64,000 nucleotides of DNA, from positions 62,001 through 126,000 of IMG/VR virus record IMGVR_UViG_3300042562_001598. The stretch is one strand, 5' to 3'. Below, piece after piece: positions 4,235 through 59,540 of the stretch. A program made the translations under genes and the position numbers. The notes under the pieces are model-generated. The model did not search any database. It saw only the letters and a program-made list of their open reading frames with translations, and had not been told where the DNA came from. The stretch's first letter is position 1. Each line of letters starts with the position of its first letter.

Positions 4235-5251
4235 ATGTATAATACAACTCTATATAATTTTTGTTTAACCTCAAGCGTGGACAATACACAAATTCACTTC
4301 AACCCTAATGGGGCTGACGATAATGATTTTAATAAATGGATTTCAGATGACTTAACCTATTCTGTCATATGGAATAATACAATTAATCGTTGGCAAGTAA
4401 CAGGTGGGACATTGGATTATTCAATATATTCAGGAACTGAATATCCCCCACTTAACGGATGGTATATTTTAGGTGCTAGTGGGTCTGTAACAGCAAATGA
4501 GGGTGTTTGTCCGACTTTAAATACTAACACGGTATCAGTTAATCTTAATCACCCACTTTGTTCTTGTGATGGGTCCATAATCGTTAATACATCCGGAGGT
4601 TATCCACCATATTTATATTCTATAGATAATGGGGTGTCGTATATTGATTTTCCGTTATTTACTAATTTATGTTCAGGTTTATATACTGTAAAGGTTGTTG
4701 ATGTATCTGGAAATACTTTAACTAATCCGGTTACATTAAATCCACCTACACCACCAACGACATATTCATTAAAGTTGTCAACAACAAGTACTACTATAGT
4801 GAATACACCGACAACTATGACAACATTATATTCAAGTGTTGTTAATGTAACACCAACATTACCTGATGGAGTTACATTAACCTTTAATTTAAGTCATAAT
4901 GATTTATTTACGATATCACCAAGTGGTAATACTGCGACGATAGTTACAAATAGTGTAATGACTAAAAATGAGGTAACTCAAGTATTAACTAATAGTGGGA
5001 CAACAACAGGAGCAACTAATTTTAATTTAACTCAAGGTTGTCAAGGTTTATTATTATACCAAACAGGGTTAACTGAAAATTGGAATACTGTAAGTATGAC
5101 AAATAGTGATACGATAGTTATTAATACGACAACAACAATTAATAAAAATGTAATATTAACCCCTTGTGATATTGCGACATCAAATGACACTTACGTCATT
5201 AGTAACGCAAGTATTTCGGGTTGTGGTTGTTGTAATGTAATTATTAATTAA
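4235..5251 (+). CDS. SprB-repeat-containing Thr-rich putative tail/adhesin protein
   Basis: CDGSIIVNTSGGYPPYLYSIDNG...FTNLCSGLYTVKVVD SprB-like repeat; C-terminal GCGCC. Confidence 0.65.
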   Translation: MYNTTLYNFCLTSSVDNTQIHFNPNGADDNDFNKWISDDLTYSVIWNNTINRWQVTGGTLDYSIYSGTEYPPLNGWYILGASGSVTANEGVCPTLNTNTVSVNLNHPLCSCDGSIIVNTSGGYPPYLYSIDNGVSYIDFPLFTNLCSGLYTVKVVDVSGNTLTNPVTLNPPTPPTTYSLKLSTTSTTIVNTPTTMTTLYSSVVNVTPTLPDGVTLTFNLSHNDLFTISPSGNTATIVTNSVMTKNEVTQVLTNSGTTTGATNFNLTQGCQGLLLYQTGLTENWNTVSMTNSDTIVINTTTTINKNVILTPCDIATSNDTYVISNASISGCGCCNVIIN

Positions 5252-5278: not shown

Positions 5279-7534
5279 ATGGGATTTATAATTAAAAATA
5301 CATCGGGGTTGATTAGTACACGATTAACGGATGCAGGTAGGTTGAAATTATCACAAGGAAATTTCAACATTTCTTATTTTCAGGTTGGTGATAGTGAGGT
5401 ATCTTACAATTCATTACCTAATACTTACAATCAATTTACTACTAATATATTAGAACCTAATTTCAATTCACAGAATTTAGCTGGTGTTCCGCAATCAAAT
5501 ATGCAGAATGTAAAATATCCTTATTATGTGGATGGGACTACAGGTAATACATACGGGATTCCAACGATGGCTTCAGCTCCAAGTTCTATTTACAATAGAG
5601 CTGCAATGAGAGGATTTTTTACTGGTGATACAACGGCAACAACAATTAATTGGAGTGCTTTAACTAGTAATGAATATGTTATTAATTCTAATTATATTGT
5701 TGAAATGTCAGGTTTAACTGGTGGAACAACAATTAAGGTTATAACTTCTGGTTGTAATTCAAATAGTGTTAGATTACCTTTAAGTGGTGATTTAATTACT
5801 ATATACTATAATGGACTTGGTAAAAGTAATTGTTATTGTAATCAGTCAAGTAGTGCTTGTACTATGTCAATGAATAGTTGTTATCCAATGATGACTTATA
5901 GAATTATTGATGTTTGTTTGGATGTATTAACATTGGATAGAAAAACACCTGATTTTAGTTATTTAAGTGGAACTTGTTATTACGCTAGAACTTTAGTTTA
6001 TCCACCAAATATGACATCATTATATGATAGTAGTACACCATCAGAACATTGGAGTGATAGTGTATTAAACTTTGAGTCTACTTGTTATGTTGATGAATTT
6101 GATGTTAAGGTTTGGAATATGAATATTCCGTGGTCTGAAAATCCAGCTGGGTTGATATCTACTCAAAACAAAGATTATACTAATTTTGGGTCTATAACTT
6201 ATTTGGGTACTAAAGAATACCTTGGTTATATGTCAAATAGTGGTCAAACAGATACTAGTTCTACTTATTATGTAAATTCATTTGGTGAGATTGTAACCGT
6301 TGAACCTAAAGACCAAAAAGCTATTGCAATTATACATTATACTAATCAGTCAATTGATTTATTTTATGGTGAAAAATTTGCGTTAGAACCTTATGATGCT
6401 AATACACCTGAAGAAAATACTGGTGAAGCAAGAAACTTTAAGTTACATTTACCTTGGTTGATGTGGCATAAAAATCCTGAATGTTGTTTGGGACAAACTT
6501 TTTGGGTTGACCCAGCTGGTTTTGATGACAAAAACTTATTTGAGGTTCAATATATTGAATCAACAAAAAATACGGATATGAATAAACCAGGTATTAGATA
6601 TTATCATTTATGGGATAAAAACGCTAATCCGGATGGATATCCAAATAGAGTTGGGAAAGTATTTCCTGACCAAAAAATCATTGTGATTGATGATGAAGAA
6701 ATAATTGCTGCGATGTCATATAAGTCAAATCGTAATTGGACTTTACCGGCACCTAAAGTTTCTTTACTCACACCAAATACTTGTGACTCAACAACAAATC
6801 AAAGTTCCACAGGTATATTAACGGATGATACCGAGTATTTGTATGTGACTTATAGATTAAGTAACTCAACAACCTTTACGGACTCATTACATTGTAATTA
6901 TTATTCAAAAATACAAGGTCCTAATAATCTGTGTTCTGGATTACCAAGTCAAAATGTTGGTGTAAGATTTGGGGGTGAGTTTAATTGTTTAAATCAAATT
7001 CCTGAAGGTTCATCGGTGTTACAAAATGGTTTTTATGCTGATAAATTTGAAATTATTTGTCAAAAAATGAATAGTGATGGTAGACCAGATTCGTCAGAAT
7101 GGAAAATACTTGATTTTACTGACCAAATTAGTGGTTCAAGTATAAATGATTTTATAACTATGAGTGGATTAACAGGTTCAACATTTGTAATAACACAAGA
7201 GGATTATACTAACGCCCCTTATTATGATTTAAGTGATGATATTATTTTACCAACGGGTTCAACAATGTCACTTAATTTTGGTGATGAATATTATTTTTAT
7301 GGGTCTATTGAGACGGATATTCAAGCAACGATTTATGAAATGAAATATAAGGTTAATTTAGGTCAATCTGAATTTCAAGCAACTTCAAATCCGACTTGGT
7401 CAAATGGTGAAACATCATATATTACTGAAGTTGGTCTTTACGATAAGGATTTTAATCTTATGATTATATCAAAGCTACAATCTCCTGTTTTACGACAGGG
7501 AATTCAACAGTTTTTAGTAAAATTTGATTTTTAA
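5279..7534 (+). CDS. Baseplate/tail-collar-fibre-like structural protein
   Basis: N-terminal RLTDAGRLKLSQG..ISYFQVGDSE and C-terminal YITEVGLYDKDFNLMIISKLQSPVLR resemble the two ends of the phage tail-collar fibre domain; TATTTAT upstream. Confidence 0.6.
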   Translation: MGFIIKNTSGLISTRLTDAGRLKLSQGNFNISYFQVGDSEVSYNSLPNTYNQFTTNILEPNFNSQNLAGVPQSNMQNVKYPYYVDGTTGNTYGIPTMASAPSSIYNRAAMRGFFTGDTTATTINWSALTSNEYVINSNYIVEMSGLTGGTTIKVITSGCNSNSVRLPLSGDLITIYYNGLGKSNCYCNQSSSACTMSMNSCYPMMTYRIIDVCLDVLTLDRKTPDFSYLSGTCYYARTLVYPPNMTSLYDSSTPSEHWSDSVLNFESTCYVDEFDVKVWNMNIPWSENPAGLISTQNKDYTNFGSITYLGTKEYLGYMSNSGQTDTSSTYYVNSFGEIVTVEPKDQKAIAIIHYTNQSIDLFYGEKFALEPYDANTPEENTGEARNFKLHLPWLMWHKNPECCLGQTFWVDPAGFDDKNLFEVQYIESTKNTDMNKPGIRYYHLWDKNANPDGYPNRVGKVFPDQKIIVIDDEEIIAAMSYKSNRNWTLPAPKVSLLTPNTCDSTTNQSSTGILTDDTEYLYVTYRLSNSTTFTDSLHCNYYSKIQGPNNLCSGLPSQNVGVRFGGEFNCLNQIPEGSSVLQNGFYADKFEIICQKMNSDGRPDSSEWKILDFTDQISGSSINDFITMSGLTGSTFVITQEDYTNAPYYDLSDDIILPTGSTMSLNFGDEYYFYGSIETDIQATIYEMKYKVNLGQSEFQATSNPTWSNGETSYITEVGLYDKDFNLMIISKLQSPVLRQGIQQFLVKFDF

Positions 7535-9064: not shown

Positions 9065-9958
9065 ATGGATGAATTTGATGTAATATTAGAAATACTATCT
9101 GACTTCTTGGGAGACCCAAAGAAGGTGTATGAACATAGTTCACAAATATCGTTCAACTGCCCAAATTGTGATGGTGATGAGAATAAAGGTAATTTAGAAG
9201 TTAATATTGAAAAGGGTGTATTCAAGTGCTGGAGTTGTGAATCCGAGGGAACACACGGAACAGTTGGTAAATTATTTGATTTATATGGTAACTCGCAATT
9301 AAAAAAAGAGTATGAGATTATACGACCTGATGAGTTCAAGAAAGTTGAGAAGAAAGTTGAGAAGTTAAGATTACCTGATAGTTATACTTTATTCAAGGAT
9401 AGTAGTCCGAGATACCCAATAAGAAATCAAGCTTACAATTACTTAAAAAATAGAGGTATAACAGATGAAATTATTGAAAAATACAATATTGGTTTTTGCG
9501 ATACGGGAAGTCATTCCGGGAGAATAGTTATACCATCGTATAATAAGAAAGGTGAATTAAATTATTATATTGCAAGGTCTTGGGATGTTAATAGTCGTGC
9601 CAAATATAAAAACCCGAAAACACCAAAAGATGAAATTATCTTCAACGAGAACTTAATTAAGTGGAGTATGGATATATATTTGGTTGAAGGAGCATTTGAT
9701 TCGGTATTTAAGTCAAATAGTATTCCGATGTTGGGAAAACACATGTCAACATTATTATTTGAAACATTATATGATAGAGCGAAAGCTAATATCATTATCG
9801 CATTAGATGGTGACGCTTACGATAGTGCGTTAAAATTATATCACACCTTAAATGGTGGTGAATTATATGGTAGAATAAAAATAGTTAAACTGCCTAAAGA
9901 TAAAGATATTGCCGACCTTAAAGGGGAAATTGATGAATATTATATTGAAATAAAATGA
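9065..9958 (+). CDS. DNA primase (Zn finger + TOPRIM)
   Basis: CPNC...CWSC zinc-binding domain, YLKNRGI, RIVIP, EGAFD and LDGD TOPRIM motifs. Confidence 0.9.
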   Translation: MDEFDVILEILSDFLGDPKKVYEHSSQISFNCPNCDGDENKGNLEVNIEKGVFKCWSCESEGTHGTVGKLFDLYGNSQLKKEYEIIRPDEFKKVEKKVEKLRLPDSYTLFKDSSPRYPIRNQAYNYLKNRGITDEIIEKYNIGFCDTGSHSGRIVIPSYNKKGELNYYIARSWDVNSRAKYKNPKTPKDEIIFNENLIKWSMDIYLVEGAFDSVFKSNSIPMLGKHMSTLLFETLYDRAKANIIIALDGDAYDSALKLYHTLNGGELYGRIKIVKLPKDKDIADLKGEIDEYYIEIK

Positions 9959-10290
9959 TAGGTGAAATGGTTGGTATATATTTGACACAAAACTTGGGTA
10001 GTCTAACCAAGGTAGAAATTCCTTTGTTTAAAAATATACCTAATAAGTTTTATTACGATAAAAATTTAGAATTACAATTTGAGTTTGACCAACACAATTA
10101 TGTGTGGGTAAATCCTTATCTTTGGATTTTTATTGGTGATATGTTCTCATTAGAAGATGATGAAATTTCATTACATATCAGAGACTGGTTAATGAAAAAT
10201 TTAGAGATTAATTATAAATTTGAGGTCCAATCAAATTACACTAACAATACCTTTTGGAATAACATACAAAAAACACTATGGGAGAATTAA
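9955..10290 (+). CDS. Hypothetical protein, paralogue family with 46820..47167 and 53005..53397
   Basis: Shared pattern LT..(L/F)G.L...IP..F.Y...F..F....I...(I/T)(K/R)(D/E)WL. Confidence 0.5.
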   Translation: MIGEMVGIYLTQNLGSLTKVEIPLFKNIPNKFYYDKNLELQFEFDQHNYVWVNPYLWIFIGDMFSLEDDEISLHIRDWLMKNLEINYKFEVQSNYTNNTFWNNIQKTLWEN

Positions 10291-11243: not shown

Positions 11244-11477
11244 ATGGAAATTAACCAACCAAGAATTGACTTAAAGAAACAACCGACGATGTCGTGTGAG
11301 GAATGTAAATCAGAAATCTTTCAAGAAATCGTATTGATTAAAAAAGTCCCTAAACTATTAACCGGAAGTCTTGAAGACACCATCGTGCCCTTTCCAAGTT
11401 ATCGTTGTGCTGATTGTGGTCATATGAATGAGGATTTTAGATTATTTGATGAAACTAATAAAACAAATTTGGTATAA
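11244..11477 (+). CDS. Small zinc-ribbon protein
   Basis: CEEC...CADCGH. Confidence 0.7.
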   Translation: MEINQPRIDLKKQPTMSCEECKSEIFQEIVLIKKVPKLLTGSLEDTIVPFPSYRCADCGHMNEDFRLFDETNKTNLV

Positions 11478-11499
11478 TTAAATAAAAGTATTATCTTTG
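11468..11499 (+). promoter_or_regulatory. Bacteroidota-type -33/-7 promoter
   Basis: TTTG-N20-TAtcTTTG. Confidence 0.7.
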
Positions 11500-11523
11500 T
11501 CAAACAATTAAAAACTACTTATT

Positions 11524-11778
11524 ATGGCTAAAGAGAAATTATACAGAAGCGTTAACGGAGAGTATTTATACCTATTCAATTGGATTGGTGGTGGATTCAA
11601 CGATGTGTGGGCTAAAAGTAAAAGAGAAGCTTATTCTAAGGTGGTGAGAGAACACAAAGAACACGAGAAGAAATACCCAACTCATGTTAAGTTGAGACCA
11701 GATTATAAGACTATGAGAAAATGCACTTATAGTGAATATCAGGAACAAAACAAAATGGGTTGGATGATGAGTATGTAA
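11524..11778 (+). CDS. Hypothetical protein
   Basis: 84-aa ORF downstream of a host-type promoter. Confidence 0.6.
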   Translation: MAKEKLYRSVNGEYLYLFNWIGGGFNDVWAKSKREAYSKVVREHKEHEKKYPTHVKLRPDYKTMRKCTYSEYQEQNKMGWMMSM

Positions 11779-12048
11779 AAACTACTTGAGTAAGTGGGAG
11801 TGGTGATATGAACGAAGACAATACTGCAAAAACAGAGAGAAATGCTCATACTCAAAATAATAGTGCCTTAAGATGCACTATTTAATGCAATTACATAAGA
11901 AAAACCAAGACGTGTATAATATAGTGCGATTTACTGCTCTTTTTATTGAAGTTTTAAAAATTAGTATTACATTTGCATGAAATAATGCTTTATAATGCAC
12001 TTGTCAGAATTAATAAAAACCAGCAAGTAATAAAACAAATTTGATTTA

Positions 12049-12222
12049 ATGAAAGACCAATATGTTATTATAGACCTTAGGAATATGGACTTTATGAAAG
12101 ATAAAGATGGTAAAATCAATTATTACGATACGGAAGAAGAAGCTTGTAGCGTATGTGGAATATATGAATTTGAGAACGCCTGGGTGATGAAATTAATTTA
12201 TAACCATATTGAACCGGAATAA
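12049..12222 (+). CDS. Hypothetical 57-aa protein (not in ORF track)
   Basis: MKDQYVIIDLRNMDFMKDKDGKINYYDTEEEACSVCGIYEFENAWVMKLIYNHIEPE; TTG-N19-TAcaTTTG at 11946-75. Confidence 0.55.
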   Translation: MKDQYVIIDLRNMDFMKDKDGKINYYDTEEEACSVCGIYEFENAWVMKLIYNHIEPE

Positions 12223-12233
12223 AATATAGACAT

Positions 12234-12482
12234 ATGAAAGCGAAATTAACTTTTGATTTAGATAATCCGGATGATGTTACAAAACACCTCCGAGCTGTAA
12301 AGTCTTTAGATTTAGCGGTCGCAATCTTTGATATTATCCAACTTAAAAAAAAGTTAGAGAGAAGATTTGAAAACCAAGATAATACTAACAATGATGTATT
12401 TGATGGTATTCAAGAATACGCTAACGAGATAGGTAATATCTTGGACGAACATAGTATTGACATTAATGAATTGTTAGATTAG
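12234..12482 (+). CDS. Hypothetical phage protein
   Basis: 82-aa ORF starting MKAKLTFDL. Confidence 0.6.
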   Translation: MKAKLTFDLDNPDDVTKHLRAVKSLDLAVAIFDIIQLKKKLERRFENQDNTNNDVFDGIQEYANEIGNILDEHSIDINELLD

Positions 12483-20398: not shown

Positions 20399-21574
20399 AT
20401 GTTTTCACGAATAAAATTTGATATTAGTGCTATGGTTACTGATATTTATAGTAAAATACCTCAAGAGATGTTTGAGTCTGATGTAACTACTTTTGTAGAT
20501 ATACAAGCGGCTGGATTACAATTTATCATTCCTTTAATAGAGATACTTCGTAAGAAAGGACATTCTGACGATAACATTCGTAATAGAGTGTATGCTTATG
20601 CCGAGAATGATTTATATTTAAATTACGTTATGTTTAAATATAAGGGCTTACCAATAACGTATAAAATATATGATGAAAAAATTAATATGAAATTTGATGT
20701 TGTAATTGGTAATCCACCTTATAATAAACAAGTTGGACCTAAAAAAACTCAACCTGTGTGGCCTAAATTTGTTGAAAAATCTTTTGATATGTGTAAGGAA
20801 GACGGTTACGTTAGTTTAATACATCCAAATGGATGGAGAAATTTTGATGGAAAGTTTAAGGATATTCAAAAATTATTATTATCTAAATGTGTTAAATATA
20901 TTAATATGAATTCACCTAGTGATGGTGTAGAAGTATTTAAAGCTCAAATTGCTTTTGATTATTATCTTATACAAAATAAAAGTCATGAAAATGAATTGGT
21001 TGATATTGTTGATTATGATGATAAATTACACAATATTGACATTAGAAATTTTGATTTTATACCAAATAGTAATATAGATTTAGTTTATTCTTTAGTTGCT
21101 AAAGAAGGTGAGGAGACTGTTAAAATTTTACATAGTTATTCTGATTATGAAACCAGAAAAAATTATATGTCAAAAGTTAGGACTGAAGAACATATTTACC
21201 CTTGTGTGTATACTGTAAAAACTAATGACACATTAACATATTTTTATAGCAATAAAAACGATAACGGACATTTTGGCGTTCCCAAAGTAATATGGGGTAA
21301 CGGTGCTAGTTATGGTGTGATTATTGACGAAAATGGTGAATATGGTTTGACACAGTTCTCATACGCTATTGTTGATGAACCTAATAATTTACCGTTAATA
21401 AAAAAAGTATTGCAAAGTAAGTGTTTTATTCAGAATATTATGGGGTATTATGGTGGTACAACGTTAATAATATTTAACAGAAAAATTATCTCAACATTTC
21501 GTAAAGATTTTTGGAAAGAATTTCTTGATGAAAATAACAATGTTATAGAACCAAAACTTACAGATGTTAAATAA
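20399..21574 (+). CDS. N6-adenine DNA methyltransferase catalytic/TRD part (Eco57I-like)
   Basis: MKFDVVIGNPPY motif IV, GYVSLIHP..W; degenerate motif I (FVDIQAAGLQF); promoter TTTG-N19-TAttTTTG at 20351-81. Confidence 0.8.
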   Translation: MFSRIKFDISAMVTDIYSKIPQEMFESDVTTFVDIQAAGLQFIIPLIEILRKKGHSDDNIRNRVYAYAENDLYLNYVMFKYKGLPITYKIYDEKINMKFDVVIGNPPYNKQVGPKKTQPVWPKFVEKSFDMCKEDGYVSLIHPNGWRNFDGKFKDIQKLLLSKCVKYINMNSPSDGVEVFKAQIAFDYYLIQNKSHENELVDIVDYDDKLHNIDIRNFDFIPNSNIDLVYSLVAKEGEETVKILHSYSDYETRKNYMSKVRTEEHIYPCVYTVKTNDTLTYFYSNKNDNGHFGVPKVIWGNGASYGVIIDENGEYGLTQFSYAIVDEPNNLPLIKKVLQSKCFIQNIMGYYGGTTLIIFNRKIISTFRKDFWKEFLDENNNVIEPKLTDVK

Positions 21575-22604: not shown

Positions 22605-23405
22605 ATGAAAACTAAAAGCTATTCAATTCCGATTAATCAAGAAGAAATTAATGTTTATCTTAAAGATATTCGTAAGATAAAAGTTATGACTCCTGAACGA
22701 GAGAGAGAACTATCAGCACTTATAAGTTCTGGGACATTAACTGAAAAAGAAATTCAACAAGTTAATAAGGAACTTTTGGAAGGTAACTTACGATTTGTAA
22801 TTACGGTCGCTAAACAATATCAAAACCAAGGATTACCATTTCCTGACTTAATCGCTGAAGGTAATTTAGGTCTTATGAAAGCCATTCATAATTTTGACTG
22901 GTCAAAAAACCTAAGATTTATTTCTTATGCTGTATGGTGGGTTAAACAATCTATTTTACAATCATTGAATGATAATGCTAGAACTATACGACTACCGGTT
23001 AATGTTGTTCAGGATTTACATCGTGCTAAGAAAGAGATTGAAAATAATGGTGGAAAACTTGAAGATAAGTTTCAAAATTTACCATCAATGATATGTTTAG
23101 ATATGAGTATTAATGAAGATGGTGACACTTTAGTTGACATAATTAAAAACGACCAAGCGGATATGCCGGATGAAATATTTAATAGTAAGGATTTATTAAA
23201 ACAAAAACTTATGTCTTTATTACATATGTTAAATGAAAGAGAAAAAATCATTATTGAGGATTATTTTGGATTGTCGGGTGCACCAAGAACACTTGAGGAT
23301 ATTGGTAATGATTTTGGATTAACTAAAGAAAGGGTTAGACAAATCAAAGAGAAGTCAATTAGATTTTTAAGAAACAATTCTAAAGAATTATTTGATTATG
23401 TATAA
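22605..23405 (+). CDS. RNA polymerase sigma70-family factor, Bacteroidota primary-sigma-like
   Basis: YLKDI (1.2), NLRFVITVAKQYQNQGL, DLIAEGNLGL, FISYAVWW, RTIRLP (region 2), TLEDIG...LTKERVRQI (region 4). Confidence 0.92.
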   Translation: MKTKSYSIPINQEEINVYLKDIRKIKVMTPERERELSALISSGTLTEKEIQQVNKELLEGNLRFVITVAKQYQNQGLPFPDLIAEGNLGLMKAIHNFDWSKNLRFISYAVWWVKQSILQSLNDNARTIRLPVNVVQDLHRAKKEIENNGGKLEDKFQNLPSMICLDMSINEDGDTLVDIIKNDQADMPDEIFNSKDLLKQKLMSLLHMLNEREKIIIEDYFGLSGAPRTLEDIGNDFGLTKERVRQIKEKSIRFLRNNSKELFDYV

Positions 23406-30334: not shown

Positions 30335-30854
30335 ATATTGTATCAATAAATCTTAAAGAATCTTTTTCATTCTTAAAGGTAAATAATTTAAGGTCGTCAT
30401 CATTTTGTAAGACGATTTTATTATTTAATTTAGATAATAATTTAAGACCTGGTTTATTCAGGTATTTTTTAATGAACTCTTTAGAGTTCATTTTTTTATT
30501 TTGTGACAAATCTAAAAATAATTCTTCTGTTTTATATTTTACAATTTTAGAAATGGTATATTCATTATCGTCAAGATTTATTTTAACTTGACGACCATAA
30601 TCATCTTTAAGATAAATGGGTGTGTGATTTTTTGGGGTTTTTTCTATGTAAGCAATTTCGTATTCTGAATAATATCCATTTTCATATTGTTTTTCAAATA
30701 TTACTTCGTTGGATTCTTTAATAAGTTTATCAAAAAACTCATCACCTTTTTTACGAGTGATAAATTTTTTGATAACTTTTTTTTGGGATTTATTCTTGAA
30801 TAGAATAATCCGGAAGTTGTAATTTATTTTATTATTTTCGGGTAAATTTGACAT
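30180..30854 (-). CDS. Hypothetical basic protein
   Basis: Long ORF downstream of dnaJ. Confidence 0.6.
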   Translation of the reverse strand: MSNLPENNKINYNFRIILFKNKSQKKVIKKFITRKKGDEFFDKLIKESNEVIFEKQYENGYYSEYEIAYIEKTPKNHTPIYLKDDYGRQVKINLDDNEYTISKIVKYKTEELFLDLSQNKKMNSKEFIKKYLNKPGLKLLSKLNNKIVLQNDDDLKLFTFKNEKDSLRFIDTISNLFFSEKKYDCMFVKDSSTAQRKYLYDLLVGRGYSKVYLHRQLTTHPTKK

Positions 30855-31749
30855 ATAATTTAATAAATAGGTCACCACTATTAAAAAATCCTTTTGATTT
30901 AACTCTCAAAGGTTTTGAGGTGTCAAATTCTGAAGGTAGTTTAATTGAGATATTACCTTTTGGATGTGGTATGGTTAATGAAGGTTTATTTAAGTCTTCA
31001 AGATTAAGGAATGAGTTATAAACCAAATCATTACCGGATTTCTCAAAATCACTTTCAGGTTGTAAATTAACTTTAAGAACTAGATTACCGTACATTCCAT
31101 CATTAAAATTACCTTTACCTTGTAATTTAAGGAATTGTCCATTATCAATTCCGTGTGGTAATTTAATTGAAATAGTTTCAATGACATTTTTAGTTGTTTC
31201 ACCATGACAAGTATTACATACATTTTTATATGTAAATCCATTACCATAACAGGAATTACAAGCTTGTCTAACCATTTGGATAAACATACCAGTTCCCATC
31301 CTTTTTACTGTAAATCCTTGACCATTACAACCATTGCAATTTGTTCGTTCACCACCTTGACCATTACATGTATCACATTTATGTTTTCTTGAGAATGTGA
31401 TGGTTTTATCGTTACCATTGTATGACTCTAATGTTCCAACATGAACATCAACAATAGTGTCAGGAACAACCCTTTGTTGTTGTGTATGAAAATGATTACC
31501 AAACATTTCATCAAAGGGATTAAATCCTCCACCACCCATATTTGCGAATGGGTTTCTTCTTTGATTATCGTATTGATTTCGTTTATTTTCGTCACCTATC
31601 GTATCAAATGCTACAGAAATTTTCTTAAACATTTCCTCATCACCACCTTTATCGGGGTGATGTTGGATTGCTTTTTTCTTATACGCTTTTTTTATTTCTT
31701 CTTGGGTTGCGGTTTCTGAGACCTCAAGAGTTTCATAATAATTTTCCAC
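30832..31749 (-). CDS. dnaJ: DnaJ co-chaperone (J domain + Zn finger + C-terminal domain)
   Basis: YYETLEV...HHPDKGGD, G/F region, four CxxCxGxG-type repeats; GTG start. Confidence 0.92.
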   Translation of the reverse strand: MENYYETLEVSETATQEEIKKAYKKKAIQHHPDKGGDEEMFKKISVAFDTIGDENKRNQYDNQRRNPFANMGGGGFNPFDEMFGNHFHTQQQRVVPDTIVDVHVGTLESYNGNDKTITFSRKHKCDTCNGQGGERTNCNGCNGQGFTVKRMGTGMFIQMVRQACNSCYGNGFTYKNVCNTCHGETTKNVIETISIKLPHGIDNGQFLKLQGKGNFNDGMYGNLVLKVNLQPESDFEKSGNDLVYNSFLNLEDLNKPSLTIPHPKGNISIKLPSEFDTSKPLRVKSKGFFNSGDLFIKLYVKFTRK

Positions 31750-32136: not shown

Positions 32137-33591
32137 ATGAATTTCATTAAATTATTATCTAATCTGATAGTTGAAGATTCTAAATTTGAGAATCTATATA
32201 ACAAATACGTTGAGGTTAAAGACAAAAAAAACCCAGAAGTTAAGAAAAAGGGATTACCTTTTGATATGTTTAAAAAATTAATATTTGCTGACCCAACAAC
32301 AAGAGTTCCCCAAGGTTTTGATGTTGACGGTGCTCAAGTAGCGGACATGGATTCTGTTAAAGTTGGTAAATATGTTCAATGGATTATCAATACTTTTGGT
32401 AAGTTACCAACAACTATTACTGATGTTGAACCTGGAACACCTGAATATAAAGAACAAGTTAAAGAATTGGTTAGATTATATTTGGAGGATTTGGACCACT
32501 TGAAAACTTTATTGGAGAAGTATGAAAGGTTTAAAGGTAGTTTACAAGACCCTACTAAAAAAGATATTAATAAAGTTAATTCTGTTGAAGAATTAATGAC
32601 TTTACCTATCGTTGTTTCAGACGAAGGTGATACGATAGAATTAGATTTATATCGTGGTAAAAAAGTTAAAAAAGTTAAAGGAGAAGATTCAACATCTCCA
32701 GCTCAAGATAAATTTAAATTCCCTGGTGCTGAAATATTAAGAGATAACGGTGAGTATACATTAATTAAAATTGCTGACAAAGGACAAATAGGTTCTGATG
32801 CGGCGTCTTATTTTGGTGGTTATGATGGTAAAGCACAGGCTGGTGAAACTAACTGGTGTACAGCTGCTAAAGACTCCGGTTACTCAAAAACTTATAGAAA
32901 CCAAGGTCCTTTATATATTTTCATTGCTAATGACCCTAAAGGTCAAGTTGGTGAAAAAACTGGATTACCTTCAGAAAGATACCAATTCCACTTTCCTAGT
33001 AACCAATTTAGAGATAGATTTCAAAACAGTGGAAATATTGATGTTGTTAAATTTATGAATGGTTCGTTTGCGGATTTTAAAGATTTATTAAAAACTGAAT
33101 TTTTACGAATTGGTGGAACTACTAGTGGTGGAGACGGTGGAAGACTTAGTGGTAGTAAAATAGAAATTAAATTCCCTGGGAATGTTTCATTATACGAACA
33201 AATATATGGTGTTGAAAAAGATTTACAAGGACAATTCAACGAGATAATTAATACATTGCCGGATGATATTGAATCATTGGTGATTAAAAACACTACAAGT
33301 ATGGATGTAGCTTTAGATGTTCCTGAATCTATTGGTAATTATAAAAATTTACAAACTTTAACTCTACTTAATTTGGTTAAAACATTACCTGAATCAATTG
33401 GTAATTTGACAGATTTACAATATTTGATTTTAACTGACAACCCTTCAATTGAGAAGATACCTGCAAGTGTTGCTAAATTACAGGATTTAGTTTTTATTAA
33501 CTTACAAAGAAGTAACCGTGGTGTAGAAATACCAGCTGAGGTTAAGGAGTTATTAGAGGATTCTTCAGATGGTTTTTACGCTATGAAGTAA
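32137..33591 (+). CDS. Leucine-rich-repeat protein with uncharacterised WCT-motif domain (late copy)
   Basis: VPESIGNYKNLQTL / LPESIGNLTDLQYL / IPASVAKLQDL LRRs; TATTTAT at 32113; leader MNFIKLLSNLIVE. Confidence 0.8.
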   Translation: MNFIKLLSNLIVEDSKFENLYNKYVEVKDKKNPEVKKKGLPFDMFKKLIFADPTTRVPQGFDVDGAQVADMDSVKVGKYVQWIINTFGKLPTTITDVEPGTPEYKEQVKELVRLYLEDLDHLKTLLEKYERFKGSLQDPTKKDINKVNSVEELMTLPIVVSDEGDTIELDLYRGKKVKKVKGEDSTSPAQDKFKFPGAEILRDNGEYTLIKIADKGQIGSDAASYFGGYDGKAQAGETNWCTAAKDSGYSKTYRNQGPLYIFIANDPKGQVGEKTGLPSERYQFHFPSNQFRDRFQNSGNIDVVKFMNGSFADFKDLLKTEFLRIGGTTSGGDGGRLSGSKIEIKFPGNVSLYEQIYGVEKDLQGQFNEIINTLPDDIESLVIKNTTSMDVALDVPESIGNYKNLQTLTLLNLVKTLPESIGNLTDLQYLILTDNPSIEKIPASVAKLQDLVFINLQRSNRGVEIPAEVKELLEDSSDGFYAMK

Positions 33592-33647: not shown

Positions 33648-35036
33648 ATGAACACAACAACAAAAACCTTAAGTAGGTTTCAAATTTTATACGATAGATA
33701 TGTTAGAAAAGGTGGTATTGATACTGCCTTTTCTAGTTTATCAAAAACACATTTATCTTTTGATGTGTTAAAGTTATTGATATCTTACGACCCCACCACA
33801 AAAACCCCAAATGATTTTGATTACGCTAAAGCTTCCGTTGATGATATGACGGATGTTAAAGTTGGTCAATATACTAAATGGTTTATAAAACATTATTTGA
33901 ACCCGGAGATTACGGAATTAATTGAAATTAATCAGGGTATTGATTATCTTACTGAAGATGTTAATAGTGAGAGATATCAATTAGTTATTAAGGAATACCG
34001 TAGAAGATTTGAGGAAGATTTGATGGGTGTTAAAAACGATTTAGTTAATTACAGAAAATATAAATTTCACATTCCGGAAGACAAAAGAGACATTAACAAA
34101 CTCAATACTCATTTATTGAGTAAAGTTATTAATGATATCCCTAGTAATATTATTGAGAAGAAGAATAGGGAGACCTTAAAGAATGAAATACGATTGGTTC
34201 GTGAGGGTTTTTATCATCCTGGTGCGACAATTGAGATTCAGGGGTCTGAATATACTTTAATTAAGATTGAGGGCGATGGTGACAAACAAGCTGAAGCCGC
34301 TTCTTGGTATGGGGGTTATTACGATTTTATAAATGGTGAGAGTAAATGGTGTACTTCACCACCTGACTCTAATTTTTTCCGAACTTATATTAAGCAAGGA
34401 CCTCTTTATATTATATTAAAGAATAAAGATGAACTTAGTAAGAGAACTGGGTTACCTATTGAGAGATATCAATTTCATTTTCAAAGTAATCAATTTATGG
34501 ATAGACATAATCAACCAATACCGCTGGTTCAGTATTTTAATGGTCATCTAAAGGATTTTAAGGACTATTTTAAGAAAGATTTTACTAAAGCCTTAATGAG
34601 TGGTGACGGGAATAGAGTTGAGATTAATTACCCTGAAACATCATCAGGTAAGTTCGTCGCAATATATGGTTTTGATAATATATTTGATTCGTTACCGGAG
34701 GATATTAGTCATCTTATTATCAGTAATAAATCAAAAGAAAAAGTATCATTTAAAATACCTGAAACTATTAATAGATTTAAGAACCTAACCGCTTTATTAT
34801 TACAAAATATTGTTAGTGAATTACCTGAAAGTATCGGGGAATTAACTAAATTGAGATTTGTATCTTTATGTGGGAATAAGTCTTTGGAAGAAATACCAGA
34901 ATCTGTTGGAAATTTACCCGAATTACTTTTTATAAATCTTAAAGATTGTAATCCGAGACTAGTGATTCCTAAAAACATAACTGACAATATGTTATATGAA
35001 GGAAATGGTTATTATTGTAAAAAAAATATATTATGA
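33648..35036 (+). CDS. Leucine-rich-repeat protein, tandem paralogue (early copy)
   Basis: IPETINRFKNL / LPESIGELTKL / IPESVGNLPEL; same WCT, GPLYI and ERYQFHF motifs; TTTG-N19-TAtcTTTG at 33597-627. Confidence 0.8.
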   Translation: MNTTTKTLSRFQILYDRYVRKGGIDTAFSSLSKTHLSFDVLKLLISYDPTTKTPNDFDYAKASVDDMTDVKVGQYTKWFIKHYLNPEITELIEINQGIDYLTEDVNSERYQLVIKEYRRRFEEDLMGVKNDLVNYRKYKFHIPEDKRDINKLNTHLLSKVINDIPSNIIEKKNRETLKNEIRLVREGFYHPGATIEIQGSEYTLIKIEGDGDKQAEAASWYGGYYDFINGESKWCTSPPDSNFFRTYIKQGPLYIILKNKDELSKRTGLPIERYQFHFQSNQFMDRHNQPIPLVQYFNGHLKDFKDYFKKDFTKALMSGDGNRVEINYPETSSGKFVAIYGFDNIFDSLPEDISHLIISNKSKEKVSFKIPETINRFKNLTALLLQNIVSELPESIGELTKLRFVSLCGNKSLEEIPESVGNLPELLFINLKDCNPRLVIPKNITDNMLYEGNGYYCKKNIL

Positions 35037-37427: not shown

Positions 37428-37742
37428 ATGGAGATTACAACAGAAGAATTAAAAAGAAAAATTGAAAATGGTGAAAAATTGGTTATTGATTTTCACGCAG
37501 CATTTTGTGTACCTTGTAGACAAATGAAACCAATCTTTGAAAGAATTGCTACAGAATATCAAGAACAAAATTCAGATGTACAATTATACACTATGGATGT
37601 TGAAGCTAATATGGCGTTCGCAAAATCATTGGGTATTAGAAATATTCCTATGATTAAAACTTTTGCTAATGGTACTGAAACTTATTCTAGAGTGGGAACA
37701 CATACTGAAGAAGAAATTAAAAATGTTATTGAAACCGTATAA
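37428..37742 (+). CDS. Thioredoxin
   Basis: DFHAAFCVPCR, GIRNIP cis-Pro motif. Confidence 0.85.
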   Translation: MEITTEELKRKIENGEKLVIDFHAAFCVPCRQMKPIFERIATEYQEQNSDVQLYTMDVEANMAFAKSLGIRNIPMIKTFANGTETYSRVGTHTEEEIKNVIETV

Positions 37743-37744
37743 TT

Positions 37745-38029
37745 ATGGATAAATTATTAATTGTCTTTACGATGAAGGGTTGTCCTTATTGTGTTGAATT
37801 AAAAAATAAAATAAAGGAAAGTGATATTGATTTCGTTGAACGCGATATTGATAAACATAAGGATGAATATGATATGTTTGTTGAAATAACAGAAAACGAA
37901 TTTGTTCCAGCCTTTATGATTGTTGAAAGTCCTGACAAAGAACCAACTTCATTGTTATTTGCACCGGAAAGAGATTTTAATGAAATTGATGAAGGTTTGA
38001 CAATTATTAAAGAACATTTTAATAAATAA
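37745..38029 (+). CDS. Glutaredoxin/NrdH-like redoxin
   Basis: GCPYC, FVP. Confidence 0.85.
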   Translation: MDKLLIVFTMKGCPYCVELKNKIKESDIDFVERDIDKHKDEYDMFVEITENEFVPAFMIVESPDKEPTSLLFAPERDFNEIDEGLTIIKEHFNK

Positions 38030-38060
38030 AAAATCCCCTTAATTGGGGATTTTCTTTTTA
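38029..38060. terminator. Bidirectional terminator
   Basis: AAAATCCCC-ttaatt-GGGGATTTT between convergent genes. Confidence 0.75.
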
Positions 38061-38885
38061 GAATACTACTAAGTCTTTTACTCTATCTCTTATCAACCAG
38101 GGTTTATCTCCAAATGGTATTGTGATATCTTCAATGATATCGTAAGATAAAATACCATGTTGAAATTTACTAATGTTAAAATCAAAAACATCCAATATCA
38201 AAGATTTAATGGTTTCTTCTTTATATATTCCATTTGATTTAATTCTAATATTAAAATCTTCATCTTTATTTTGAGATAATGAAAACTTAAATGTTATTTC
38301 TGACGCACCAATAATATCAAAAATTTGGTTACAAATATATTCTGAATAATAAAGATTACTTCTACCCATAGATAAGCTATGTCCATAAGGGAATTCTGAT
38401 GTTATATTTAAAGGATTGTAAGTGTAGTAATCAAGATTTGATACATTCTCTTCAGAGAAGTCAATTTCAGGTTCTAATTGGTGTGTATAGTTAACTGAAT
38501 GAAATTTATAATCAGTTGTTGAGTTTTGAACAAAATCGGTAACATCTTTATGGTAGTAAGGTCTAATATTGTTTGAATATAATGTGAAGAAATGTTCATC
38601 TTTTTTAACTAATTCGTGTTTATAGATGATTAAATCAATTATATTAATGTGTTCATAACCGAATATTGTTAATAGTGTTTTATATTCAGTCATAAATTCT
38701 TCTTTAACTGTCATTATGTCTAAGATTTCTTCACAATTTGTCATACCATTGACAACTAAAAAACGACCACAGTCAACCACTTCAATTACAACATCGTATT
38801 GTGTAGTTTTATTTATTTTTTTAACTATAAAATCTGCGAATAGATTTACAATTCCTCTGTTAGAATTTTTATTAATATACTTCAT
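38058..38885 (-). CDS. Degenerate S-adenosylmethionine synthetase (MAT/MetK)-like pseudo-enzyme
   Basis: Manual alignment to recalled MetK N- and C-domains (RS..Y...Y....I; L...FD; FG..PW...D); catalytic motifs absent. Confidence 0.6.
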   Translation of the reverse strand: MKYINKNSNRGIVNLFADFIVKKINKTTQYDVVIEVVDCGRFLVVNGMTNCEEILDIMTVKEEFMTEYKTLLTIFGYEHINIIDLIIYKHELVKKDEHFFTLYSNNIRPYYHKDVTDFVQNSTTDYKFHSVNYTHQLEPEIDFSEENVSNLDYYTYNPLNITSEFPYGHSLSMGRSNLYYSEYICNQIFDIIGASEITFKFSLSQNKDEDFNIRIKSNGIYKEETIKSLILDVFDFNISKFQHGILSYDIIEDITIPFGDKPWLIRDRVKDLVVF

Positions 38886-38934
38886 AATTTTTGTTTTATG
38901 TTAATTAATAAACAAAATAAAATATTATATAAAT

Positions 38935-38964
38935 AAAAAAAAGGAGAAATAATCTCCTTTTTTT
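38935..38964 (-). terminator. Intrinsic terminator
   Basis: A-run, GGAGA-aataa-TCTCC, T-run. Confidence 0.7.
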
Positions 38965-38983: not shown

Positions 38984-39127
38984 CTACTTTTTAGTATAAT
39001 AACGCTCAACTACTTTACGAACTGACTCTTGAATTGGCTGAGTTTGAGGTTGAGCCGGTGCTGGAGTTTGGTTAGTTTGTTGTGTAGTTTGTGTCTGATT
39101 TTGTTTATTTTTACAACCACATGACAT
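38984..39127 (-). CDS. 47-aa Gln/Thr/Pro-rich peptide with MSCGCK N-terminus (not in ORF track)
   Basis: MSCGCKNKQNQTQTTQQTNQTPAPAQPQTQPIQESVRKVVERYYTKK; TATTTAT on - strand at 39160-66, terminator downstream. Confidence 0.65.
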   Translation of the reverse strand: MSCGCKNKQNQTQTTQQTNQTPAPAQPQTQPIQESVRKVVERYYTKK

Positions 39128-54891: not shown

Positions 54892-55866
54892 ATGGGTAAT
54901 AAAACATTAAAGGTGGTTAGTTTATTTTCAGGGTACGGAACACAAGAATTGGCTCTGAAATATCTTGGGGTTAACTATGAGAATATTGCTAATTGTGATA
55001 TCTTAAAATCGGCTAATGAAGCTTACGATAGTTTACATACTACAGAGTGTGGTAACTTGGGGGATGTGTCAAAGATTGATGAAACACAATTCCCGGATTG
55101 TGATTTCTTAACATATTCATTCCCATGTCAGGATATCTCAATCTCTGGTGTTCAGAAAGGTATTAAAAAAGGAACTAGGTCAGGTTTATTATTTGAGGTT
55201 GAACGAATCGTTGAATACAATAAACCAAAGTATTTGTTAATGGAGAATGTTAAGAACTTGGTATCAAAAAACCATATTGAAGCGTTTTCTGAATACATTC
55301 GTAATTTGGAAGAATTGGGTTATGGAAATCACTGGATGATATTAAACGGAGCTGATTATGGTTGCCCCCAAAATAGAGAAAGGGTTTTTATGTTTTCTGT
55401 ATTGGGTGAGAGTAATGAGGTTGTTCGTGAAAAAATGTTGGGGGTCTTGAACCTTAAGGAAGAAAGGGTTCCGATGAAATGTTATATTGAGGATGATGCT
55501 GATGAAAAGTTATTTATCAATCCCCCATTTGAGTGGAATGATTCCAAGGTAAAGTCGGTGTGTAAATTAATTGCTAGAAGAAGTGATATTAAGTATGACC
55601 AGACCCGTAGGATATATTCAACTGAAGCTTGTTCTCCTTGTTTAACAACATCGGGTTCACCTCAGATAATGTTGGAGGATAAGAGAATAAGAACATTAAC
55701 TGCAAGGGAAGGTTATCGTTTTATGGGTGTTAAAGATGAGGATATTGATAAGTTATTGACAACCAAATTATCAACCAATCAACATATTGCTTTGGCTGGT
55801 AACTCAATATGTGTTCCGGTTATGAGTGCAATATTCCAACAATTCTTTGAGGAATATCAAAACTAA
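54892..55866 (+). CDS. dcm: C5-cytosine DNA methyltransferase
   Basis: LFSGYG (I), SFPCQD (IV), MENV (VI), QNRERV (VIII), AGNS (X). Confidence 0.92.
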   Translation: MGNKTLKVVSLFSGYGTQELALKYLGVNYENIANCDILKSANEAYDSLHTTECGNLGDVSKIDETQFPDCDFLTYSFPCQDISISGVQKGIKKGTRSGLLFEVERIVEYNKPKYLLMENVKNLVSKNHIEAFSEYIRNLEELGYGNHWMILNGADYGCPQNRERVFMFSVLGESNEVVREKMLGVLNLKEERVPMKCYIEDDADEKLFINPPFEWNDSKVKSVCKLIARRSDIKYDQTRRIYSTEACSPCLTTSGSPQIMLEDKRIRTLTAREGYRFMGVKDEDIDKLLTTKLSTNQHIALAGNSICVPVMSAIFQQFFEEYQN

Positions 55867-58766: not shown

Positions 58767-59540
58767 ATGAAAAAAGTTTTAGTGTTATTAGTTGGTGTGT
58801 TATTTTTAGGTTCATGTCATCGTCCAGAACCAAATTATGAAGGTGTTCTTATGACAGATTATGGTAGGAATGGAATTGAGTCGTTCAAGGTTGTAACCGG
58901 AGCTCAAGGAATATTAGGGCCTGGAACTGAGTTGTATCAAGTTCCTATGTTTGAACAGAAAGCGGATGTTGATGCCGTTAGAGTATCTGCGAAAGATGCT
59001 GGTGTATTCACAATTGACCCTAGTTACTCTTATCAGGTAACCAGAACCAAAGGTCCTAATATCGTGTTAAACTATAAACATTTGGGAACTGGGGATGGGT
59101 TTTTAGATAATGTTGAAGAAAATGTATTAAATAAATTGGTAACAGATACATTCAGAGAAGAAGCGAGAAATTATACTACAGATTCCCTTATGAATAACCT
59201 TAATACCTTTGAGAAAAGAGTTGAGAAATCATTAACTATTAAGTTTAGTAATAAGTTCTTCACCTTAAACACTTTAACATCCGGGTTAACACCACCAAAG
59301 TCTATGGCTGAAGCAATTGAAGCTCGTAACAATGCTATTCAAAAGGCTAACCAGGTTAGGAATGAGTTGGAAACTTCTAAATTATACCAAGAAAAAGCGC
59401 GAATTGATGCTGAAACTGATAGAATTAAGTCAGCTGGTTTAACCAAAGAAGTCCTTCAACAAAAATGGATTGAGGCCATTAGAACCTCAAATAATAGAAT
59501 TATTATCACTGATGGTAGAACACCAATAATCTTAAACTAA
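58767..59540 (+). CDS. SPFH/Band-7/prohibitin-domain lipoprotein
   Basis: Lipobox LGSC, EGV...YG, VSAKDA, AIEARNNA coiled coil, LQQKWIEA. Confidence 0.8.
   Translation: MKKVLVLLVGVLFLGSCHRPEPNYEGVLMTDYGRNGIESFKVVTGAQGILGPGTELYQVPMFEQKADVDAVRVSAKDAGVFTIDPSYSYQVTRTKGPNIVLNYKHLGTGDGFLDNVEENVLNKLVTDTFREEARNYTTDSLMNNLNTFEKRVEKSLTIKFSNKFFTLNTLTSGLTPPKSMAEAIEARNNAIQKANQVRNELETSKLYQEKARIDAETDRIKSAGLTKEVLQQKWIEAIRTSNNRIIITDGRTPIILN

Follow-up and report, generated by a model that had tools for sequence, protein, structure and literature searches.

A new viral protein family with a predicted methionine adenosyltransferase fold and without the residues for S-adenosylmethionine synthesis

The 64,000-nucleotide stretch of the viral contig IMGVR_UViG_3300042562_001598 (282,192 bp) analysed here, hereafter the window, carries on its minus strand an open reading frame (ORF) for a 275-amino-acid protein related to methionine adenosyltransferase (MAT; MetK), one of the most conserved enzymes in biology. 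The ORF belongs to a new, unannotated viral pseudo-MAT branch of the MAT superfamily. Its product descends from MAT/MetK but has been reduced and has diverged strongly, and, judged from its residues, it cannot be an S-adenosylmethionine (SAM) synthetase. The initial annotation of this DNA had described it as a catalytically dead MAT mimic, and the ORF was recovered with exactly the sequence quoted there. The gene and the parts of its product are the following:

38058–38885, minus strand: 275-amino-acid MAT-like (pseudo-MAT) ORF; ATG start, stop codon 38058–38060.
38616–38885, minus strand: residues 1–90, first MAT repeat, resembling S-AdoMet_synt_N and complete (HMMER, secondary structure of the model).
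38406–38615, minus strand: residues 91–160, pared-down middle repeat (AlphaFold, conservation, hhalign map).
38361–38399, minus strand: residues 163–175, signature loop S-x-F-P-[HY]-G-[YHF]-S-x3-G-R, in which conservation within the family is highest.
38061–38360, minus strand: residues 176–275, third MAT repeat, resembling S-AdoMet_synt_C (Pfam PF02773, HMMER, hhalign).

The likeness to MAT was revealed only by two diverse family alignments, A2 (84 sequences) and A4 (116 sequences). The sole matches of the A2 profile in the PDB were methionine adenosyltransferases (6rjs and 6rk5, E value 1.3e-3; 5t8s, E value 2.7), and the A4 profile reproduced this result. The HMMER matches of A2 are collinear with the enzyme: profile positions 12–67 pair with MAT residues 20–78, and positions 156–230 with residues 262–338. 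The aligned segments (family/MAT) include lvNlfADfIl/ICDQISDAIL, ieVtdc..ffvvkGkt/CEVLACNRLIVIAGEIT, mgRsllYyleyia.n/vDRSASYFARWIAKN, and ilDvFDf/IKKSFNF. When A4 was compared by hhalign with an alignment of 41 MetK sequences (Escherichia coli MetK and the MetKs of viral contigs), query residues 14–272 aligned with MetK residues 25–377 at an E value of 9e-5, and the C-terminal KPWL was paired with FPWE of MetK. Both HMMER and hhalign returned the registers that had been proposed by eye for the N and C termini in the initial annotation. A phmmer search of the PDB with the single sequence gave a chance match only, the profile built from close homologues (A1) recovered no MAT from the same database, and hhalign against the single E. 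coli MetK sequence was weak (probability 2%). Also, a MetK hidden Markov model did not retrieve the ORF at E ≤ 1. Overall identity of the MAT-like protein to MetK is only 10–14%.

Pfam agrees with these comparisons at the level of the third repeat. Namely, S-AdoMet_synt_C (PF02773) matched the ORF with an E value of 0.072 and 13.5 bits, the gathering cut-off being 25. The same Pfam family was matched individually, and weakly, by 11 of 84 members (best E value 4.3e-5). No further Pfam family was matched by more than two of the 84 members, and S-AdoMet_synt_N and S-AdoMet_synt_M were not among the 25 Pfam families most often matched.

AlphaFold2 run with A4 produced a model with a predicted local distance difference test score (pLDDT) of 96.2 and a predicted template modelling score (pTM) of 0.92; with the shallow close-homologue alignment A1 the model was poor (pLDDT 57). 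A Foldseek search of the PDB returned 154 matches with E values below 1e-3. The best 50 of these 154 were all MATs from bacteria, plants, and humans, with E values of 6e-13 to 3e-11, a probability of 1.0, and template modelling (TM) scores of 0.56–0.66 on the query; among them is the MetK chain of 8bb1, a complex with the T3 SAM lyase. The comparison with MAT structures that had been suggested as a check of the initial annotation thus came out in its favour. Since the profile, hhalign, AlphaFold, and Foldseek results all point to MAT, the predicted MAT fold can be regarded as securely assigned. In BFVD, the sole match was A0A6J5L9B3 (E value 7.6e-12), an uncharacterized and unannotated 208-aa protein of an uncultured Caudovirales phage, with a TM score of 0.65 on the target and 18% identity. 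Most likely, it belongs to the MAT-like family as a short member. The nearest clusters in a protein-language-model atlas were MAT families, some of them viral and short (193, 239, and 309 aa), which we note as a lead only.

The MAT-like ORF is a real gene under strong purifying selection. At the level of 90% clusters it has 736 homologues, all of them from viral or metagenomic contigs. Clustered at 50% identity, the matches of an exhaustive HMMER scan formed 192 clusters; E values were below 1e-10 for 120 of these, and lengths were about 205–277 aa. The median ratio of nonsynonymous to synonymous substitution rates (dN/dS) was 0.116 (range 0.047–0.307; 74 pairs among 25 relatives, restricted to 0.05 < dS < 1.5). 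Chance resemblance and non-gene status were ruled out by the homologue counts, the AlphaFold and Foldseek results, and the dN/dS values. Screening 185,579 species genomes turned up no member of the family, the 50,697 phage genomes searched with tblastn contained no match, and a PHROGs search with the single sequence returned nothing meaningful; as an annotation, the family is absent from both Pfam and PHROGs. Our literature searches retrieved no described catalytically dead MAT paralogue and no paper on this family. A lone run labelled as RNA, which holds part of the region, offered no evidence of expression and is probably DNA of a relative. A large family has thus kept the MAT fold under strong purifying selection while discarding its chemistry.

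The gene is also a core syntenic gene of a clade of freshwater jumbo phages with contigs of 215–321 kb. It was located in 66 IMG/VR loci on contigs of up to 321 kb, and a patchy distribution typical of accessory genes was not observed: the syntenic position is the same in all 66. The identity of the MAT-like proteins among related loci (38–58%) lies in the range of the neighbouring genes.

The protein shares with bacterial MetK/MAT (PF00438, PF02772, PF02773; PDB 6rjs, 7r3b, 1xra, and 8bb1 chain A) the predicted three-repeat beta-alpha-beta-beta-alpha-beta fold, collinear from the N to the C terminus. Echoes of MetK can be recognized in helix 1, in strands 2–3, in a helix of the DRS-AAY type, in a helix of the FFDL type, and in KPWL, which corresponds to FPWE. 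The differences are equally clear. The protein has 275 residues versus about 384 in MetK (about 380–400 in MATs), its central domain is below full size, it stays below the Pfam gathering threshold, and its family is confined to viral and metagenomic contigs. Unlike MetK, it displays its own motifs, S-x-F-P-x-G-x-S-x3-G-R, NS-x-x-G-x-VNLFADF, and KS-x-ILDVFDF.

In the AlphaFold model, the first repeat comprises strand 3–4, helix 9–24, strands 32–38 and 42–49, helices 57–74, and strand 81–87; N5-x-x-S8-N9-x-G11 stands in place of GHPDK. The middle repeat consists of strand 97–103, a conserved loop F-Y-N-S-x-R-P-x-Y, helix 113–121, and strands 128–133 and 137–141. Residues from about 118 to 155 are variable, or missing in roughly half of the family, which the shorter A0A6J5L9B3 resembles. 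The region of GAGDQG, Lys165, and GRK has no counterpart in this repeat. In the hhalign map, 98 MetK residues are without a counterpart, nearly all of them between MetK positions 105 and 270. The initial annotation had regarded the central domain as mostly missing. This is correct with regard to the 98 lost residues, but the repeat has been pared down rather than removed, and its strands and helix remain. The signature loop follows, with S163, F165, P166, and G168 conserved at 88–99%. The third repeat is formed by helix 175–192, strands 196–202 and 214–217, helix 223–233, the KS-x-ILDVFDF segment, and KPWL.

The loss of the catalytic machinery was assessed for 15 MetK residues that are invariant or nearly so in the MetK set. 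Twelve of these lie inside the hhalign alignment, and eleven of the twelve (Glu55, Gln98, Asp118, Lys165, Phe230, Asp238, Arg244, Lys245, Lys265, Lys269, and Asp271) are deleted or replaced, while the equivalent of Glu42 is kept as glutamate in 41% of the family. The other three, His14, Asp16, and Lys17, are outside the hhalign alignment and, as we read the HMMER register, fall on S8, R10, and G11. The absence of catalytic motifs claimed in the initial annotation proved to be family-wide: GHPDK, GAGDQG, TGRK, SGKD, HGGG, and DRS are absent from all 269 family proteins fetched. Because the ATP-, methionine-, and metal-binding residues of MAT are deleted or replaced, the protein should be incapable of SAM synthesis. 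The signature loop was aligned in two ways. Pairing P166-x-G168-x5-G174-R175 with GGPxGDxGLTGRK of MetK is weak (E value 0.24) and would equate R175 with Arg244; pairing with the P-loop/DRS segment HGGGAFSGKDPSKVDRS is weak as well and about equal in strength (E value 0.11). Either alignment leaves the protein unable to be a SAM synthetase.

An active but extremely divergent SAM synthetase would be consistent with the MAT fold and with the possible match of R175 to the catalytic Arg244 in one of these two equally weak alignments. Against this stand the 13 key residues from His14 to Asp271, that is, all those checked except Glu42 and Arg244, which have no equivalents, and the deletion of the P-loop. 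Archaeal MATs, too, keep these catalytic residues. We therefore rejected an active enzyme, which hardly merits any credence, on the basis of the residue map and the absence of the motifs in 269 proteins.

What the family has conserved is distributed unevenly. Weighted conservation is highest in the hydrophobic cores of repeats 1 and 3, in three loops, and in an adjoining strand. Near-invariant residues are N5, S8, N9, and G11; N105, R108, P109, and Y111; S163, F165, P166, G168, S170, G174, and R175; and D84 and Y88. The conserved loops are the three that precede the first helix of each repeat. In MAT, the loops ahead of each repeat's first helix converge on the substrate pocket at the flat face of the sheet. 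On strand 81–88, residues D84, I86, and Y88 are conserved, and Y88 is aligned with the methionine-binding Gln98. Positions 33, 35, 37, 43, 45, and 48, which by alignment and strand periodicity lie on the sheet face that forms the MAT dimer, are variable. The conserved residues would thus occupy the site of the MAT substrate pocket on the flat sheet face. Ser, Asn, Arg, Tyr, His, and Gly abound in this patch, and the carboxylates by which MAT holds Mg2+ and K+ are missing from it.

Our tentative preference is for a MAT-style homodimer with a remodelled pocket. The ligand of such a pocket, perhaps also its substrate, would be a new small molecule, probably anionic, or else a short segment of a partner; the protein would serve a housekeeping function of the phage clade rather than act as a poison subunit of host MetK. 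An own pocket is favoured because the conserved patch is local and the rest of the face is variable. A protein that binds the whole, extremely conserved dimer face of MetK should be conserved across its face, while a protein with a local site need not be. Several points weigh against this preference. The placement of the pocket rests on the MetK alignment, the secondary structure of the model, and strand periodicity, not on measured distances; no homologue suggests a ligand; and expression data for the gene were not found. Also, a patch facing the conserved active-site surface of MetK could equally be an epitope for binding MetK.

This last point leads to the proposal made in the initial annotation, namely a dominant-negative or regulatory pseudo-subunit of host MetK. 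In a heterodimer of the two via the flat face, both composite sites would be dead, SAM would drop, and type I restriction–modification (R-M) and bacteriophage exclusion (BREX) systems would be disarmed. MAT active sites are located at subunit interfaces and are built from both subunits, and a MAT fold with dead catalytic residues, whose conserved loops would face the conserved active-site surface of MetK, fits this proposal. Most of the predicted dimer-face positions are variable, however, and the identity to MetK is low. A drop in SAM would starve at least two DNA methyltransferases of the phage itself. That the gene is core and syntenic and, unlike a sporadic accessory gene, has diverged to the degree of its neighbours weighs mildly in the same direction. 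Pre-formed MetK dimers are stable, and subunit exchange during infection would be slow, which also counts against a poison subunit. The computed evidence did not support a role as a pseudo-subunit of host MetK in anti-defence, and we consider such poisoning unlikely.

A functional precedent does exist in the SAM lyase of phage T3, which cleaves SAM and inhibits MetK and thereby evades type I R-M and BREX (bioRxiv 10.1101/2023.02.27.530186; PMC8406200). The analogy drawn with it in the initial annotation holds insofar as both are phage proteins tied to the SAM/MetK node. The T3 lyase, however, is a catalytic early accessory gene product with an unrelated fold, while the MAT-like gene is a non-catalytic core gene. 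No SAM lyase chain was present among the 50 Foldseek matches or the sequence matches listed, and PADLOC and anti-defence libraries were not searched. A broader form of the proposal would make this protein the first viral pseudo-MAT to plug into host MetK or to cap its active-site face, switching off or re-tuning SAM synthesis, possibly aided by the 47-aa CxC protein described below; to this form, too, we assign a low probability. If binding to MetK were true, it would be a new phage route to the control of SAM, in which subunit mimicry controls SAM-dependent defences and methylation. If a new ligand were true, the family would show repurposing of the MAT scaffold. Either way, hundreds of hypothetical proteins receive a fold-level annotation, and a concrete target for biochemistry is available.

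The opposite effect on SAM is conceivable if the dead paralogue stabilizes or de-represses an active MAT of the host or phage and so keeps SAM available for the phage methyltransferases. A catalytically dead yet conserved MAT-like protein, with the low dN/dS reported above, in a phage that depends on SAM would suit such a role, and full-length metK genes are common in viral contigs. Dead paralogues that activate enzymes of the SAM pathway have a precedent in the prozyme of trypanosome S-adenosylmethionine decarboxylase (AdoMetDC; PMC6221367). Like prozymes, the MAT-like protein derives from an oligomeric enzyme of SAM metabolism, is catalytically dead, and is kept under purifying selection. 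Unlike the trypanosome prozyme, it is viral rather than cellular, and no active paralogue was found adjoining it: neither the window nor the 10 kb on either side of the 66 related loci contained a match to the MetK profile. Moreover, an activator would share with a poison subunit the weak conservation of the interface. The chance of a prozyme-like activator is, in our opinion, small.

Many viral contigs in IMG/VR carry a full-length metK (loci L007–L086). The relatives of E. coli MetK retrieved number 126, many of them about 360 aa long, and some of the contigs that carry them are 245–330 kb long. A metK of this kind is a plausible ancestral source of the pseudo-MAT family.

The immediate surroundings of the MAT-like gene contain a second conserved gene and several regulatory candidates:

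38984–39127, minus strand: conserved small protein of 47 aa, encoded upstream of the MAT-like gene on the same strand.
38936–38964, minus strand: hairpin with a T-run, resembling an intrinsic terminator, between the 47-aa ORF and the MAT-like ORF.
38886–38935, minus strand: conserved AT-rich region from which the MAT-like gene may be transcribed by a promoter of its own (12 diverse loci aligned).
38028–38055, bidirectional: terminator-like hairpin common to the convergent glutaredoxin and MAT-like genes.

The 47-aa protein is composed of an N-terminal MGCGCKNK, a low-complexity linker rich in Gln, Pro, and Thr and of variable length, and an invariant C-terminal helix IQESIRKVVEKYYKK. In 32 of 36 loci its ORF directly precedes the MAT-like gene; in L140–L142 it is found about 2 kb upstream. 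The protein atlas returned viral hypothetical proteins only. The N terminus could represent a CxC metal or redox site, located near thioredoxin and glutaredoxin genes. A eukaryote-style reading of MGCGC as a dual-acylation (myristoyl/palmitoyl) signal was rejected, the genome being that of a bacteriophage with a sigma-70-family factor and a primase. The 47-aa protein may be a partner of the MAT-like protein or a mere syntenic neighbour.

Three terminator-like sites were found in the region versus 0.4 expected from shuffled sequences. The hairpin between the two ORFs is kept in 12 diverse relatives, among loci L087–L145 at around positions 9900–10000, with stems that differ from each other (GGAG/CTCC, GGGG/CCCC, and GGGA/TCCC). 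Common to the 12 aligned loci are TATTTA(T/A) directly after the hairpin and, about 8–10 nt before the ATG, a box resembling (G)TATAA(T); no Shine–Dalgarno sequence was detected upstream of this start codon. The pattern of nucleotides marks the AT-rich region as a candidate promoter of the MAT-like gene, whose mRNA may be leaderless or have a short leader. Because a conserved hairpin with a T-run and AT-rich motifs separate the two genes, these may form separate or differentially read-through transcription units.

This arrangement bears on a further possibility, namely that the stable MAT fold has only been reused for a scaffolding or structural role, for example in the virion or together with the 47-aa protein. 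The conservation of the 47-aa ORF in sequence, position, and strand in nearly all loci agrees with a joint function, and the MAT-like protein is acidic (predicted pI 4.98). Against a scaffold speak the conserved terminator between the ORFs and their separation by 2 kb in the three loci named above. The MAT-like gene is also without structural-protein neighbours, and its sharply local conservation resembles a binding site rather than a lattice contact. We regard a structural role as improbable.

A contig from lake metagenome X2 joins position 38022 to position 39099, so that the MAT-like gene is absent from it, as is most of the small ORF. Its depth is 9.2 versus 35.5 for the main form, with 21 letters on the shorter side of the junction and a likeness threshold of 90%. 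The junction may be an artefact or belong to another organism; if real, it may be a natural variant without the cassette.

The gene order shared by all 66 loci is g575, g105, thioredoxin, and glutaredoxin on the plus strand, the MAT-like gene and the 47-aa ORF on the minus strand, and then g446 and g256. Even homologues with only 25–27% identity are convergent with the glutaredoxin gene, while the genes upstream of them differ. We read the adjacency to glutaredoxin as deep synteny by descent within one large phage clade; a functional link of the MAT-like gene to the redoxins may exist. This sequence is found repeatedly in metagenomes of lake water dated 2016 to 2025.

The statement of the initial annotation that the ORF is encoded by a phage with its own methyltransferases was borne out by the gene content of the window, which includes genes for DNA primase, an exonuclease, an SbcC-like protein, a sigma-70-family factor, DnaJ, thioredoxin, glutaredoxin, and two DNA methyltransferases. 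The genome is that of a bacteriophage with its own DNA methyltransferases. The features outside the MAT-like locus are the following:

37428–38029, plus strand: thioredoxin (37428–37742) and glutaredoxin (37745–38029), identified by Pfam and convergent with the MAT-like gene.
20399–21574, plus strand: DNA methyltransferase of the Eco57I type.
54892–55866, plus strand: DNA methyltransferase (phrog_116, E value 6e-74).
22605–23405, plus strand: sigma-70-family factor with regions 1.2, 2, and 4 (phrog_351, E value 1e-49).
30832–31749, minus strand: full-length DnaJ with J domain, CXXCXGXG zinc-finger domain, and C-terminal domain.
32137–33591 and 33648–35036, plus strand: two adjacent leucine-rich-repeat proteins (LRR_14).
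58767–59540, plus strand: SPFH/Band 7 domain protein (Pfam E value 1.5e-14; phrog_200, 'lipoprotein').
943–1947 with 1966–4221, and 4235–5251 with 5279–7534, plus strand: a two-gene layout present twice, a SprB-repeat ORF followed by a 751-aa ORF.

Additional methyltransferases are encoded near the loci of relatives (for instance at 1164–2015 and 11396–12235 of locus L001), and the types present in the clade include N6_N4_Mtase and the Dam-like MethyltransfD12. The presence of several DNA methyltransferases in the clade suggests a heavy dependence on SAM. The sigma-70-family factor of the phage implies phage-specific promoters.

The gene for DnaJ is one of few minus-strand genes in the window; as a clue to the host, its product was uninformative. 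SprB repeats in two ORFs and the missing Shine–Dalgarno sequence hint at a Bacteroidota host, which we treat as a weak lead. The SprB-repeat ORFs (334 or 338 aa) matched with E values of 2.5e-6 and 2.2e-5, just under the Pfam cut-off, and the two pairs of the duplicated layout display hardly any BLASTP similarity to each other (E values 0.004 and 0.03). The two LRR_14 proteins appear to be paralogous and have one and the same best match in related loci.

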